Assembly (NCBI GenBank): GCA_907165135.1 | Contig: OU015566.1 | Span: 3,658,001-3,722,000, forward strand | Length of the DNA stretch: 64,000 nt | Direction: 5' to 3' | From: Oikopleura dioica | Lineage: Eukaryota; Animalia; Chordata | In this document: piece by piece, positions 39,641-64,000 of the stretch | Numbering within the stretch: position 1 is the stretch's first letter | Layout of the letters: every line of letters starts with the position of its first letter | Translations under genes and position numbers: made by a program | The notes under the pieces: model-generated | What the model was told of the DNA's origin: nothing | Databases searched by the model: none | Seen by the model: the letters and a program-made list of their open reading frames with translations, nothing else

Positions 39641-40260
39641 TTAAGCCTCATTGGATTTGGTGCTCGATGCCGACCACTTTCGTCTGTTACGTTGGATTTT
39701 TCGCATTCGTTGTCTGGTCCCTTTTCTAGCCGGAGTTGGCTCCATTTTTGGCAAGCCGGGTTTGACCACGCGTTTGGCGAGGATGATAGTAGAAGCGACC
39801 GCTTTAACGCGGATTTCGATCGCTTGGAGTTTGTCTTGGAGTTCGTTTCTTGGCAATGCTATTGGTCGAAATGGGATCTGACGTCGACCATACTTGGTTT
39901 GGAAAGCATCCGTGAGGTATGCGATCAGTCGGTCTCTGGTTTCATGGAAGGTCATATGGGCGACGATGATGGTTTTTGCGATCCAAGTAGAACGCATTGC
40001 TCGGTTTCTTGTCTTGGGATTTGATTCAGAAAGGCGTCCAGGAAAGCGTCAGAGTTTAAGTTCGGGATGGACCGGTAGGTGATGGCGGAAGCGGTGACTT
40101 TATCGATAAAATCGTACATGGCTTGGACGGGCTGCTCATCACGAAGGGTCATGGTTCCAATGGGTATTTCGATTCCGACCATTCTTGGGAGGAGCAGCGT
40201 TTTTACAATTCGTCGGTTTGACGCGGCTTGGATCGTTTGGATTTCTTTAAGGATTGACAT
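39641..40260 (-). CDS. Unknown ~205-aa protein with basic C-terminal tail; last ORF before the PPT (two ORFs joined by a -1 shift at T5 39973-39977)
   Basis: ORFs 39952-40260 and 39641-39997 overlap in frames differing by -1 at an A5 run. ATG is preceded by TTTTTAG-T. Tail RKGTRQRMRKIQRNRRK. Confidence 0.55.
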
Positions 40261-40483
40261 ACTAAAAATCGGATGTTGGATGAAAGTGGCCTATTTTAAA
40301 GGAGTGAGCGCTATTCATAAGGCATAAAGATTTTGTTTGAAGTTCGAAATAATGGGTACAGACATAAATGGGTGGCAGCTACTATATTCTGGGTGTTTAA
40401 GTTGTTGTTTGTCAGGATCGAGCGGGATTAACTACGTAATTGGTTAGTGTTGGTTTTGTAGCGCCATCGCGTTTATATAGTAA

Positions 40484-41403
40484 TCACCTTTTCCTTCTAT
40501 TCCCTTTCTCTTCTTCCTCCGAGTGTTCGAGGAGTTCTGCGATGTAGATTTGAAGCCGCCGGGTTCCCGCGTTCACAAGTCTTGCTATTTCCTTGACTGA
40601 CTTTGGTCGGTTTATTCGGTCGATATATACGTAGGTGCTGGCGGCGGCGAGCGTTTTTGCTGAGGTTGTGGCTGATGGGGTTTCTTTGCTTATCAGGATG
40701 GCATGCGCTTCGATTTCTTTCGCTTGGTGATTAGTTAATCGAAGCGCAGCTGCTATTCTTTGGATGTAAGGTTTGATTCTGTTTTTAATGTGTGCGTCGA
40801 TTTTTGCTGTTCTGAGGAAGGTATCGAATTTGCGAATCATTCTCTGGGTGATTAGGGAGAGGTGCCAGTTGCCTGGCAGATTTCTTCCAAGCTCAGGTCG
40901 CAGTTCTCTTGCTTACTGGCCAGGTAGAGGCACGCCGCTATTGCCACGGGTTCTGCGCGATTTTGGCGGTGGAAGTACCAAGTTGTTCCCTGTTTTTCTT
41001 TGAGGTATAGCTTTTTGATGAGTTCGTAAGCTCGTAGTTTTGTATTAGTGAGTCCTGAGTATATCAATCGGGCTCCTGCTTCTTCGATGAGGTCTTCACA
41101 TTCCCGAAGGACAGTTTGTAACCTATTTTTCTCGCGGTTGGATAGTTGGGCCTCGTTTGATATGATGCATTCGTCCCCTGTTTCTTCGTTATTCCGGGTG
41201 AAAGTTTTTGGCAAGTTTTCGTTTGGTTTGATGGCCGTCACTCGCATTGATTTTTCTGGGTTGAGTGGTGGGCATCTTTCTCCTACGACAAGTCCGCATA
41301 TTTTGCAGATAAGGTCTCCTGTCACAAGCCTTTCGTCGGCTATGTGCTTTGGGCCATGATATGAGCAGGTAAAGGCGGGAAGAGAGCAGCCTGGAGCAGA
41401 CAT
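40484..41403 (-). CDS. TFIIB-like general transcription factor (Zn ribbon + two cyclin folds), split by a 1-nt shift at 40855-40857
   Basis: CSYH...GDLICKICGLVVGER (TFIIB CPNH...GDMICPECGLVVGDR); AIAACLYLASKQEN..LSLEEIC; second repeat TLAAASTYVY...KSVKEIARLV. Adding one C at TCTCCCTAA fuses 40852-41403 with 40484-40840. Confidence 0.85.
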
Positions 41404-41440
41404 TCTAAAGCGTGTTTCGTTACAATTTGGTAGTCGAATT

Positions 41441-42412
41441 TTACGTCCGCCTGATTTTCCATTGTCTTGACAGAATTCTATGAATTATTTTAATCAGGTA
41501 AAACAGTCCGCCTGTTGCTAGCGTTAGAGTGCCCGCTAGGGTTGCACCGATCATGGTACAGGAGATAAACGTTTTTTCCGTGAATTTGTCGACAGTACAG
41601 ACGGACTCGGATTGGGCACATGCGTGCTGTGCTTTCCAGAAGAAGTAACGCGGGTCAGCAGGATCATATCCAGTTTCCGCGAAATTCCTCGTCTCTTTTT
41701 CTGATAGTATCGCGTATTTATCAATTTTGCAGATAAATGAAGCTGGGGTCTTCAACAGTTGTCCTGCCTTAAGGAGGGTCGTCCAAGGTGTTTCGTGGTT
41801 GTATTGGTGTTTGAGGAGCACAAAATTCATAATTAGAAAAATAAGGTCAATGACGCACAGACTGGTTAGGAACAAGATTCGTTTCCAGTTCGTTGATGGT
41901 GTCGTGATGACCAGGCGATTACCTTTGTATTTTTCTTTGAAGCCTTGCATATGCCCATATTTTGAGCGGAGTTCATTAAGCCTCTTCAGTTGAAATGTCC
42001 AGCTTGGCCGGTCCTGGCGATTTGGCCAGACGATTAATTCTGTCGGTTTTGGGTTTATGTCGTGTTCGAGTAATCGCATAAGCTGTACGTCTTCTGCGGG
42101 TTTCAGGATAAGATGTCCGAGCCCCAGAGTGACGATCCCAATAATGACGAGGTGCCAAGTCCAAAATCTAGTCAGGTTGACTGGTAAAAATTGGTTATAG
42201 CAAACTGAGCTACACAGTTGCTGTTTGGTGCTACATCTGAATCCGCCTGAATCGTTTGAATAAATTTCCGTACCAACTGTTAATAGGACAATACTTCTTA
42301 CCAGCAAAGTTGCGTACCAGACTTTACCGAGGGGACCGAGGTGTGGGAGCAAATCATTGAGCCCAGAAAGCAGCCCACTTGCCTTTTCTCCGATAATTTT
42401 ATGTTTATCCAT
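41441..42412 (-). CDS. Connexin (gap junction protein), intronless, 323 aa
   Basis: LGKVWYATLLVRSIVLL (TM1). EL1 with exact C-x6-C-x3-C: FRCSTKQQLCSSVCYN, then RFW. EL2 FIC...CAQSESVCTVDKFTEKT (cf. PCPNTVDCFISRPTEKT). Four hydrophobic segments. Confidence 0.92.
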   Translation of the reverse strand: MDKHKIIGEKASGLLSGLNDLLPHLGPLGKVWYATLLVRSIVLLTVGTEIYSNDSGGFRCSTKQQLCSSVCYNQFLPVNLTRFWTWHLVIIGIVTLGLGHLILKPAEDVQLMRLLEHDINPKPTELIVWPNRQDRPSWTFQLKRLNELRSKYGHMQGFKEKYKGNRLVITTPSTNWKRILFLTSLCVIDLIFLIMNFVLLKHQYNHETPWTTLLKAGQLLKTPASFICKIDKYAILSEKETRNFAETGYDPADPRYFFWKAQHACAQSESVCTVDKFTEKTFISCTMIGATLAGTLTLATGGLFYLIKIIHRILSRQWKIRRT

Positions 42413-62444: not shown

Positions 62445-62518
62445 GTTGGATTTCGATTCTGAAAGAATGATACTAAGACTGATGACTCTACTTTGACTTG
62501 ATTAGGAAGGTGCTTGGG

Positions 62519-63112
62519 TCAGCCCCGTCGTCGGCTAAAGCCTTCCGGTAGCTTTCCCGTGAACAGTAGTGGGCGTATGTTTTGTCCTTCAATTTCAATT
62601 TGATGCCGATTTCTTCTAAATCCGGCCCGAGCAACCGCTTCACGCAATAGCCTTCGTTCTATGCGAGATGCTAGGCTTCGCAGGTTAAAATCGACAATTC
62701 TTGCTACTTCGCAGTCGTCCAACTTCGCCTTGCTTAATATGTCCCATGTTTTTTCGTTGTCTATGTGTGCTCGGAAAAATTTCGCAGCCTCGCGTTGTGC
62801 TTGTTGATTGTATGCTTCTGCAGTTTGGGTTGATCTGATTCTTAAAGCTACATGAAAATGCCAGTGTAGTAGCTCTTCGAGTGTTTTTGGACTTGCTTCG
62901 TTTTGCAAAAACTTCTTCAGTTTATTCAATCCCTTTTGCGCGCTCATTTGTTGTAGCGTCGTGCTGTTTATTACTCTTGTTGTAAGCAATGCTATTGAGT
63001 CGATATTTCCTTCGAATTTTGAGATGACGTGGTACTGTTTATTTCTGTAGAGTATTTCTGGAATGAGGTCCAAGTATCGATTTCTCAAGCTTTGAAGGGT
63101 CTCTTGTTTCAT
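62519..63112 (-). CDS. Unknown family Y protein, copy 2 (Arg-rich C-terminus)
   Basis: Paralog of 59857-60417. CTTAAG-GACGAAA-ATG. Confidence 0.6.
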   Translation of the reverse strand: MKQETLQSLRNRYLDLIPEILYRNKQYHVISKFEGNIDSIALLTTRVINSTTLQQMSAQKGLNKLKKFLQNEASPKTLEELLHWHFHVALRIRSTQTAEAYNQQAQREAAKFFRAHIDNEKTWDILSKAKLDDCEVARIVDFNLRSLASRIERRLLREAVARAGFRRNRHQIEIEGQNIRPLLFTGKLPEGFSRRRG

Positions 63113-63422
63113 TTTCGTCCTTAAGTTTATGGTAAGTTATGATGGTGATTGCTTTGGAGGCATTCCAATCGTCTCTTTTATTGTCCCAAGTCGAGATTTT
63201 TTCAAGGAACTGATCGTTACTCCCGACTTTAGAGTCTGTTATCAGAAGTTTAAATATTTTCCCACTAAGCTCATAACTTTTAATTTTGAAGTCGGTCCCG
63301 AGTGTTGAGGTGAAACATTCAGAAAACGTTCCGTCGGCAAATCGGATTAACAGTCTTGATCCATATTCGCTGAAGTTTTCGTTCATGAGTATCCTCAATA
63401 CGTGGTTGTATCTAGGGTTCAT
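63039..63422 (-). CDS. Truncated, P-loop-degenerate Rab1-like pseudo-GTPase
   Basis: MNPRYNHVLRILM-NENFSEYGS-RLLIRFADGTFSECFTSTLGTDFKIKSYELSGKIFKLLITD aligns ungapped with Rab1 [63 protein letters not shown]. G1 and G3 motifs are destroyed; no C-terminal Cys. Confidence 0.85.
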   Translation of the reverse strand: MNPRYNHVLRILMNENFSEYGSRLLIRFADGTFSECFTSTLGTDFKIKSYELSGKIFKLLITDSKVGSNDQFLEKISTWDNKRDDWNASKAITIITYHKLKDENETRDPSKLEKSILGPHSRNTLQK

Positions 63423-64000
63423 TTAACAGTCTTAACTATTTGTAAAATGTCTCTTTTCCATCGAAAGAGGCGTTTGCGAAAGCATGGAAATCATCTCTTC
63501 CGCGCCTTCTAAGAGAGGGTTGCCATCTCTCATTTTTTCGGAATCTGTTTGTCTTATAGATATTCTCTTCAAGCGCAAGTTTTCCCAATCATTTGGCGTC
63601 CTATAAGTTATTATGTTTAAAAAAAATAATGCAATTAGATGAAAAGAGACGATTTTAATGATTTATCGTCTCGTCTGGAACAAAGAGATCATATTTGAGC
63701 TCAACTTTTATCTAGTTTGAGTTTAAGAATTCTAAAAAGATGTCCTTACGTTGAAATATAATGAAAAACCCGGATAAATTTTTTGTAACACGTAGACCAT
63801 GTGGCTTTGGCTCTTCTCGAGTATAACGCACATGTAGAACATCGCAGCATTTTATTGCTTTTCTTAAATTCCTCCTTTAAACGATAGAACTGTAGTTTAC
63901 ACGAAAAGACGAGGCTCTGATGATAAACACTCTCTTCCGAAAACGTTAAGTCATTATGCTTCTGCAAATAAATACCAAAATCAAAATGGAATGTATTTAA

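Follow-up and report, generated by a model that had tools for sequence, protein, structure and literature searches.

How might a retroelement-derived unit express roughly 25 short genes that lie one behind another on a single strand? The question is raised by a stretch of 64,000 nucleotides (nt) from the chordate Oikopleura dioica (assembly GCA_907165135.1, contig OU015566.1, positions 3,658,001 to 3,722,000 of the forward strand), which we call the window and in whose coordinates all features are given. A gag reading frame within it is 100% identical to the public gene model chr1.g979, which places the window on chr1 of O. dioica OKI2018_I69. The minus strand from 39600 to 63450 carries a block of co-oriented open reading frames (ORFs) with an A-rich sense strand, in which a gag-pro-pol core of the Tor type has cargo genes on both sides; this block is best explained as one copy of a very large Tor-type (Ty3/gypsy) retroelement-derived unit. 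A preliminary description of the window, made from its letters, had remarked that a splice-acceptor-like AG sits just before most of the cargo ATGs, and had proposed that the element uses the host's spliced-leader (SL) trans-splicing, or one 5' donor with many acceptors, to express about 30 proteins from one long-terminal-repeat (LTR) transcript. Each of the 23 AG sites that it quoted is present as written, with a minus-strand ATG and the right letters upstream of it.

An acceptor-like motif upstream of the ORF starts

On this A-rich strand (34% A in the sense of the block) a bare AG before an ATG is barely over background and is a weak observation: it ends within 2 nt of 15 of the 38 ORF-start ATGs (39%) and of 22% of 307 other ATGs of the strand, and within 20 nt the figures are 87% and 75%. 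What is non-random is the placement, not the copy number, of a sharper motif, TT[T/C/A]AG. Among 41 sense ORFs, which were mechanically called, non-overlapping and at least 45 amino acids long, 20 have this motif ending 0–20 nt 5' of the ATG, against 15 of 135 control ORFs (Fisher p 9e-7); the controls are antisense ORFs (4/38) and ORFs in the host part of the window (3/45 and 8/52, or 11/97). The strand holds 65 copies, against 62 expected from dinucleotide shuffles, and 20 of the 65 lie within the 3.6% of strand positions just upstream of ORF starts (binomial p 8e-14). A scan of all 1,024 pentamers places TTTAG first (8/17, p 5e-8), followed by TTAGA, TTCAG (7/26) and TTAAG (5/22). TTNAG is 6.5-fold enriched and is alone among the NNNAG classes in this (CTNAG 0/70, TCNAG 1/80). 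The observation of the preliminary description is real once it is narrowed to TT[T/C/A]AG, which precedes about half of the ORFs.

Further properties of the motif were measured on a set of 25 sites, made up of the 20 above together with alternative ATGs from the preliminary description and smaller ORFs; this set was partly picked knowing the motif, a bias from which the 20 of 41 and the k-mer scans are free. The share of pyrimidines at positions -15 to -4 is 0.58 at these sites and 0.43 at other AGs of the strand (p 3e-6), an A follows the AG in 19 of the 25 as against 38% of other AGs (p 2e-4), and in the counts by NNNAG class G never occupies position -3 (TTGAG 0/20). By these measurements TT[T/C/A]AG, in most cases with an A after it, has the characteristic features of a 3' splice site. 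It fits the published rule for O. dioica, in which the trans-splice site is an unpaired AG acceptor, usually with an adenine after it (PMC6389100). Host introns in the window end in a T-rich YAG (TTTCAG or TCTAG). A search upstream of the acceptors for branch-point-like YTRAY gave no signal (5/20 against a background of 17%). Depletion of the donor motifs GTAAG and GTGAG seemed to be present against mononucleotide shuffles and was not seen with dinucleotide-preserving shuffles (GT[AG]AG z -1.5). The 3' part of the spliced leader (its last 16 nt, up to 3 mismatches allowed) does not occur in the window DNA, as both trans-splicing and splicing from a donor within the element would have it; the same result speaks against capture of SL-bearing cDNAs.

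The ATG lies no more than 8 nt from the AG at 20 of the 25 sites. The 40 stop-to-ATG gaps comprise three overlaps, 18 gaps of 9–80 nt and 19 of 93–323 nt, so the earlier impression of gaps "mostly tens of nt" is right for 18 of them and too low for 19. Distances from stop to acceptor are mostly 23–100 nt; in O. dioica operons the spacer from poly(A) site to acceptor is 23–30 nt (PMC1488885) and the intercistronic distance is at most 60 nt, with a median of 31 (PMC7986045). By our own tally the motif is carried by 11 of the ~15 gene units that have homology or paralogy support, and the ORFs that do not carry it are for the most part fragments of gag-pol or have a stop-free stretch that extends back into the preceding ORF. 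At three acceptor sites (63436-63441, 60974-60979 and 50751-50756, minus strand) the same hexamer, AAATAG, precedes the motif, which hints that some junctions are paralogous duplicates and not independent of one another.

Where homologues allow the natural N-terminus to be located, it falls on the acceptor-adjacent ATG in all four ORFs with clear homologues. The homologue of CKS (cyclin-dependent kinase regulatory subunit), read from the ATG at 61347, 1 nt after TTCAG, aligns to human CKS1 from residue 2, and it is this ATG, not the upstream one chosen by the ORF finder, that fits the homologue. The Rab1-like ORF aligns from its residue 1 to Rab-1A (PDB, 4e-12), residues 7–47 of the TFIIB homologue align to residues 9–48 of human TFIIB (5.6e-7), and the connexin domain begins at residue 18 of its ORF, which is position 9 of the profile. 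The comparison with these homologues shows the ATGs after the motif to be true protein starts, and the four ORFs whose N-termini are anchored in this way are therefore cistrons in their own right and not internal exons. The figure of about 30 proteins is nevertheless too generous, densely packed and co-oriented as the ORFs are: at about eight junctions the stop-free stretch of the downstream ORF extends back into the preceding ORF, so the two may be one gene in pieces, and gag and pol are themselves interrupted. The public models chr1.g979, PAR.g12805 and PAR.g12811 fuse neighbouring ORFs of the block through predicted introns, partly out of the homologous frame; being ab initio fusions they give no evidence of expression, and the public annotation hides the operon-like layout.

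Proposed splicing of a long sense transcript, and its rivals

The placement of the motif, its splice-site hallmarks and the rules known for O. dioica together make splicing of a long sense transcript the most economical reading of the block. Such a transcript would be spliced at the TT[T/C/A]AG sites, between the AG and the A that usually follows, and each ORF so marked would then become the first reading frame of an mRNA of its own. We put the probability that the motif sites are functional acceptors that create the mRNAs of these ORFs at about 0.5. Trans-splicing affects 39% of O. dioica genes and resolves 1,765 operons; in this species the 40-nt spliced leader goes to acceptors that have no paired donor, and SL trans-splicing of a polycistronic precursor is the default expectation. 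It is thus plausible for the transcript of the element. Cis-splicing from a donor in the leader may coexist with it, and if the acceptors are functional we lean towards SL trans-splicing over leader cis-splicing, with the rider that both may occur. Sequence alone cannot choose between the SL and one donor with many acceptors, and both the use of the sites and the identity of their 5' partner are matters that we infer. The full scenario is more tentative: that a Tor-type element of more than 24 kb, recently copied between two chromosomes, uses the host's SL trans-splicing to turn one transcript into about 25 mRNAs, captured host regulators among them, seems to us somewhat unlikely to hold in all of its parts.

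Several observations weigh against a spliced long transcript. AAG, usually a weak acceptor, accounts for seven of the 25 sites, and purine-rich sequence lies upstream of several. The strict TT at positions -5 and -4, with none of the 70 CTNAG copies so placed, is narrower than a generic acceptor would require. The motif is missing from 21 of the 41 ORFs, and one spacer in two is longer than 90 nt. Depletion of splice-donor motifs does not reach significance, so the acceptors are not demonstrably unpaired. Efficient trans-splicing at about 25 sites would destroy the full-length RNA that a retroelement needs. The gag and pol frames are interrupted 3–4 times, and this copy may be inert. Finally, the window contains only one LTR-like end, and a single LTR-driven transcript is a conjecture.

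The most serious competitor is cis-splicing in the manner of retroviruses, in which one or a few donors in the 5' leader are joined alternatively to many acceptors, giving nested subgenomic mRNAs that owe nothing to the host's spliced leader. Such splicing has been shown for the related elements Tor3a-1 and Tor3a-2, in which a donor near where gag begins is joined to an acceptor ahead of env (PMC4402516). In the block the only GTGAGT (57918..57923, minus strand), a sequence resembling a 5' splice donor, lies 41 nt upstream of the gag ATG, a GTAAG lies at 63749, upstream of the first ORF, and weak acceptors would suit the need to keep some of the RNA unspliced. An acceptor ahead of every accessory ORF, as such a scheme would have it, is found for about half of them. 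The ORFs upstream of gag carry the same motif, however, and would need another donor further 5'; acceptors are readily trans-spliced in O. dioica; and the donors of Tor3a are non-canonical (GA), which makes scanning for donors uninformative. We regard leader cis-splicing as a real possibility with the odds clearly against it. Each ORF or small group of ORFs might instead be transcribed from a promoter of its own, TTNAGA(C) then being an initiator-like or other promoter element and not a splice site. The absence of G at -3, like the pyrimidine tract, indicates a splice site, and spacers of 9–80 nt leave no room for promoters. There are precedents nonetheless, since Tor3b and Tor4b use an internal promoter for env (PMC4402516), and O. 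dioica operons have cryptic internal promoters, with a core element TCTAGA whose AGA can coincide with trans-splice sites (PMC6389100); the element also encodes TFIIB-like proteins. TCTAGA, the male-specific promoter element, occurs three times in the block and is not tied to ORF starts. It acts 40–50 nt upstream of the start of transcription (PMC6389100), a distance that would put the start inside the ORFs. Separate transcription thus appears improbable.

There are two further explanations. The ORFs and their acceptors could be relics, for instance of host-operon genes or of a once-active element, in a copy that is now dead in transcription or in function and whose layout is idle. The gag and pol frames are interrupted 3–4 times, the TFIIB-like gene has its frame split in two, the Rab1-like ORF retains neither its P-loop nor its C-terminal half, about eight junctions have a downstream stop-free stretch reaching back into the preceding ORF, and the window contains no 5' LTR. 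Decay of that kind sits poorly with two copies on different chromosomes that are 99–100% identical at the protein level and hence recently copied, with a CKS that is well conserved over its whole domain, and with a motif whose placement is sharp and not eroded, and the apparent frame changes may be errors of the Nanopore assembly; we give the fossil explanation a similarly slim chance to that of separate promoters. The ORFs could also be exons of a few larger cis-spliced genes, the AGs being ordinary intron acceptors and the ATGs incidental. Internal exons have no reason to begin with an ATG within 8 nt of the AG, as 20 of 25 sites do, or to provide the starts of four homology-anchored proteins. 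What speaks for exons is that the spacers resemble the tiny introns of O. dioica in length, that host introns in the window end in TTTCAG or TCTAG, and that the public ab initio models do fuse ORFs, chr1.g979 joining the ORF at 58752 to gag through a TTCAG acceptor; yet these models leave the homologous frame, for example in the TFIIB-like model g12811 on PAR. This is the least probable of the alternatives, and we think it very unlikely.

The core, the cargo and their surroundings

All credible ORFs from ~39.6 to 63.45 kb, including all of those with homology or paralogy support, are on the minus strand, in an uninterrupted same-strand series such as an operon would have; the minus strand is meant for every feature of the block below. 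The AT skew is about -0.25 throughout the block and ends sharply near 39.65 kb and at 63.45–63.7 kb. A exceeds T on the sense strand in 29 of 29 cargo ORFs, at third codon positions too, as it does in gag-pol, and the ABC and ACE host genes nearby lack this bias. A spliced coiled-coil host gene (4029-12133, plus strand) has an A-rich sense strand like that of the element, third positions again included, so composition alone is no mark of retroelement origin.

The core, at about 52.5–57.9 kb, encodes a Ty3/gypsy gag, protease, reverse transcriptase, RNase H and integrase, with the domains in the Ty3-gypsy order. The gag gene (56034..57906; ATG at 57882 with TTCAG 19 nt upstream) has a CCHC knuckle near its end, and the protease–reverse transcriptase–RNase H–integrase region (52472..56515) matches Pfam RVT_1, RT_RNaseH, Integrase_H2C2 and rve; CCHC and D[T/S]G motifs are visible in the translations of the core. 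Gag is 37–38% identical to 553-amino-acid proteins that cluster with the named O. dioica gag AAT48676.1, and pol is 72–73% identical to intact pols of 1145 and 1201 amino acids on metagenome contigs of 4.7–8.9 kb; by sequence the core is of the Tor type, and its closest relatives are of ordinary size. Both frames are interrupted, gag by one frame change relative to its 553-amino-acid relatives and pol by two relative to the intact 1145-amino-acid protein and three relative to that of 1201, and the copy does not have the uninterrupted gag and pol of an autonomous element. The assembly was built with Canu/Racon/Pilon on Nanopore reads (PMC8008620), so that in a repeated element such as this the indels could well be Nanopore errors and not real decay. 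No direct repeats flank the core, which argues against a simple nested insertion of it. Outside gag itself there are three further copies of its C-terminal domain, one of them upstream of the core and the other two as a tandem pair in a single downstream ORF. From the last upstream cargo ORF to the gag ATG there are ~510 nt (57883-58392) without a convincing ORF; they hold a palindrome, TGTTATAACA, that resembles the LTR-like termini, as well as the GTGAGT donor-like site, and may be the ancestral leader of the Tor core.

At the 3' end of the block, directly after the last ORF, a polypurine-tract-like run (39575..39587) immediately precedes an LTR-like stretch of about 307 nt (39268..39574), which starts with TG, has a candidate CA end and 6-nt inverted termini, and contains TATATAA (39411-39417) and AATAAA (39346-39351) in the right order; its 3' bound is uncertain. 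A second LTR copy was not found in the window (seed 14, minimum length 60; blastn word sizes 7–9), so two LTRs are not seen there, and a 5' LTR, if any, could lie beyond base 64000. An 8-nt perfect inverted repeat forms a hairpin at 63646-63673, ahead of the first cargo ORF, in the interval over which the A-richness declines. The interval from 63.45 to 64.0 kb has no recognisable feature, and Rfam and tRNA scans of the block gave no match.

Cargo takes up ~5.5 kb before gag and ~13 kb after pol and consists of roughly 25 short same-strand genes: a CKS homologue, a Rab1 fragment, a connexin, two TFIIB-like genes, five RING fingers (of which two come after paralogous Zn-ribbon ORFs), three gag-derived loci, a two-member orphan family, several small ORFs with membrane spans, and other orphans. 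None of the cargo ORFs has an intron, as would be expected of genes that pass through RNA. In the order of transcription the upstream cargo begins with the Rab1-like ORF (63039..63435; Pfam Ras; TTAAG 8 nt before the ATG at 63422), which has a degenerate P-loop and aligns over its first ~65 residues only. It is followed by an orphan ORF (62519..63124; TTAAG 7 nt before the ATG at 63112), a small ORF (62253..62463; TTCAG 14 nt before the ATG at 62444), and a gag-derived paralogue (61571..62329) that is 46% identical to the C-terminal part of gag and has AAAAG, not TTNAG, directly before its ATG. The CKS gene (61105..61353) comes next; it matches the whole Pfam CKS domain (2e-26) and human CKS1 (1e-18), with about half of the aligned residues matching by our count from the alignment. 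Then come an ORF with an N-terminal membrane span (60489..60969; TTTAG 2 nt before the ATG at 60962), two orphans (59857..60423, TTCAG 1 nt before the ATG at 60417; 58973..59763, TTAAG 6 nt before the ATG at 59752), and, last before gag, an orphan (58393..58776; TTTAG 19 nt before the ATG at 58752) that is a paralogue of the ORF at 47570.

Downstream of pol the series resumes with an ORF with a C-terminal membrane span (51785..52096; TTTAG 4 nt before the ATG at 52087) and a RING finger ORF (51556..51741) whose ATG follows CCAAG-A and not TTNAG. Two small membrane-span ORFs (50371..50750) have their ATGs, at 50741 and 50517, each 4 nt after TTTAG or TTCAG, and are followed by a small ORF (50032..50298; TTAAG 4 nt before the ATG at 50289), an orphan (49356..49891; TTAAG 21 nt before the ATG at 49865) and another membrane-span ORF (49003..49287; TTTAG 1 nt before the ATG at 49281). 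A run of ORFs from the ATG at 48979, directly after TTTAG, may be one gene in pieces (48198..48984), and so may a Zn-ribbon ORF, whose ATG at 48163 directly follows TTCAG, together with the RING finger ORF after it (47630..48168). The next run (46423..47580), from the ATG at 47570, 5 nt after TTAAG, opens with the paralogue of the orphan that precedes gag. A weakly TFIIB-repeat-like ORF without TTNAG follows (45416..45892; Pfam TFIIB 0.0047, below the cut-off; TFIIB in the PDB at an E of ~1), then a second Zn-ribbon and RING finger pair, possibly one gene (44592..45371; ATG at 45366 directly after TTCAG), two RING-H2 ORFs, the first with its ATG (44539) 1 nt after TTAAG (43695..44545), the ORF with two tandem gag-derived domains (42765..43634; TTTAG 1 nt before an in-frame ATG at 43622), and a small ORF (42459..42689; TTCAG 13 nt before the ATG at 42671).

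The connexin-family ORF (41441..42424; TTCAG 7 nt before the ATG at 42412) matches Pfam Connexin at 5e-18, above the cut-off. Its closest relative is O. dioica chr2.g5441, at 47% identity, and further relatives lie on short marine metagenome contigs; a word-indexed search had come up blank, and the relatives came from an exhaustive one. The TFIIB homologue (40484..41409; TTTAG 1 nt before the ATG at 41403) has a zinc ribbon, which is clear, and cyclin repeats; it gives weak Pfam TFIIB matches beside the alignment with human TFIIB, and its frame is in two pieces, with one frame change. One may speculate that the element-encoded TFIIB-like paralogues matter for the element's own transcription, given the unusual testis-specific core promoter element of O. 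dioica. The last two ORFs, orphans that overlap each other (39641..40266), have TTTAG 1 nt before the ATG at 40260. Comparison of the orphan ORFs revealed no further paralogy below an E of 1e-3 beyond the families already described, and Pfam searches of the remaining small ORFs added no family.

Giant gypsy-like elements of the Burro type would have an internal region of more than 20 kb that moves as one unit. The block is ~24 kb long, and proteins from both sides of its core recur in identical form on chr1 and on PAR. Those of the ORFs at 60962 and 49865 are identical on two contigs (14.53 and 17.09 Mb), that is, on two chromosomes, and the TFIIB-like protein has the model PAR.g12811 as its cluster mate. 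The gag model PAR.g12805 matches chr1.g979 without a difference through residue 515, a stretch that runs from the ORF at 58752 across the spacer into the N-terminal part of gag. Altogether at least ~20 kb, on both sides of the core, is present on chr1 and PAR at 99–100% protein identity, the comparison being one of proteins. In an exact look-up of the ORFs, three of the block, and only three, match public O. dioica proteins exactly. Two copies so nearly identical suggest that the whole unit was copied recently; the second one may also stem from a segmental duplication or from a duplication in the assembly.

The remainder of the window, bases 1–39 kb, is host DNA with ordinary genes: the coiled-coil gene already mentioned (4.1–12.1 kb), an ACE-like peptidase (~15.9–18.3 kb), an ABC transporter (21.8–24.4 kb) and a tRNA-Val. 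Two structures in it may bear on the assembly. A near-perfect long palindrome at 66-2373, centred near base 1213, has nested inverted-repeat arms of 62–311 nt that are 70–100% complementary (98–100% in the six longest pairs), and may be either a foldback element or an artefact of long-read assembly. Immediately beyond the downstream end of the element, and adjoining its LTR-like end, a direct duplication of ~1.8 kb (34393-36217 and 37053-38787, 83–98% identical) surrounds a gap of 500 N (36308-36807) and looks like a scaffolding or haplotype artefact.

Relation to known systems and significance

The SL operons of O. dioica (Ganot 2004 and Danks 2015, 2018, as cited in PMC6389100, PMC1488885 and PMC7986045) resemble the block in having co-oriented cistrons, short spacers and an AG followed by A before downstream cistrons, in the same organism. 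They differ in that the cistrons of the block, known here from DNA alone, belong to a retroelement-derived unit and are mostly orphan or captured, fast-evolving genes. About 25 cistrons in a row would be far more than are known from host operons. Complex retroviruses have one major donor and many acceptors, with a weak acceptor before each accessory ORF, and balance unspliced against spliced RNA. They have a handful of accessory genes compared with the ~25 of the block, and in O. dioica trans-splicing is on offer as another source of the 5' partner. By analogy the layout would resemble in its working both an operon of O. dioica and the splicing by which complex retroviruses express their accessory genes.

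Among retroelements, the Tor elements with a third gene (Henriet 2015, PMC4402516) have related gag and pol and extra coding capacity downstream of pol, and the env of Tor3a, expressed by splicing from a donor near the gag start to an acceptor upstream of env, is alike in kind (PMC4402516). These elements have that one extra gene where the block has ~25, some of them upstream of gag; no ORF of the size of env is seen in the block, and its ~24 kb compare with 4.7–8.9 kb for the contigs of its closest relatives. Cer1 of Caenorhabditis elegans (Dennis 2012, PMC3315495) is likewise a Ty3/gypsy element, and its spliced 2.4-kb mRNA carries the host's SL1; its full-length RNA must skip consensus splice sites (PMC3315495). 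Cer1 differs in having a single trans-splice site and no multi-gene cargo. With Cer1 on the one hand and the env of Tor3a on the other, trans-splicing and cis-splicing both have a Ty3/gypsy precedent. The giant retroelements Burro, Ogre and Terminons also far exceed the usual limit of ~10 kb and contain extra domains (Arkhipova and Yushenova 2019, PMC6431247). Terminons are Penelope-like and not of the LTR type (PMC6431247). The gypsy-like Burro of planarians is multi-copy, with an internal region of up to 25 kb, and its extras too concern ubiquitination and host regulation (PMC6431247); as reviewed there, however, its extra domains lie within long reading frames, with env in frame between gag and pol, whereas the block has many separate short cistrons with an acceptor-like signal before about half of them. 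In the Oikopleura transposon literature that we searched, no ~24-kb Tor-derived unit with this cargo in two near-identical copies was found. Giant gypsy-like elements with regulatory cargo are thus already known, and what is new here is a gypsy-type giant unit with many separate short cistrons that have acceptor-like signals of their own.

Retroelements are usually held to two or three genes by the limits of translation from one capped RNA and of a manageable number of splice variants. A host that trans-splices provides a ready-made way to make any downstream ORF 5'-proximal, and if the reading favoured here is true, it would explain how a Ty3/gypsy element can carry ~25 cistrons. The block would then be a retroviral "operon" with a CKS, TFIIB-like factors, RING ligases, a connexin and a Rab1 fragment, and such units would be a mobile route by which host-derived regulators (CKS, TFIIB, RING ligases, connexin) are spread.

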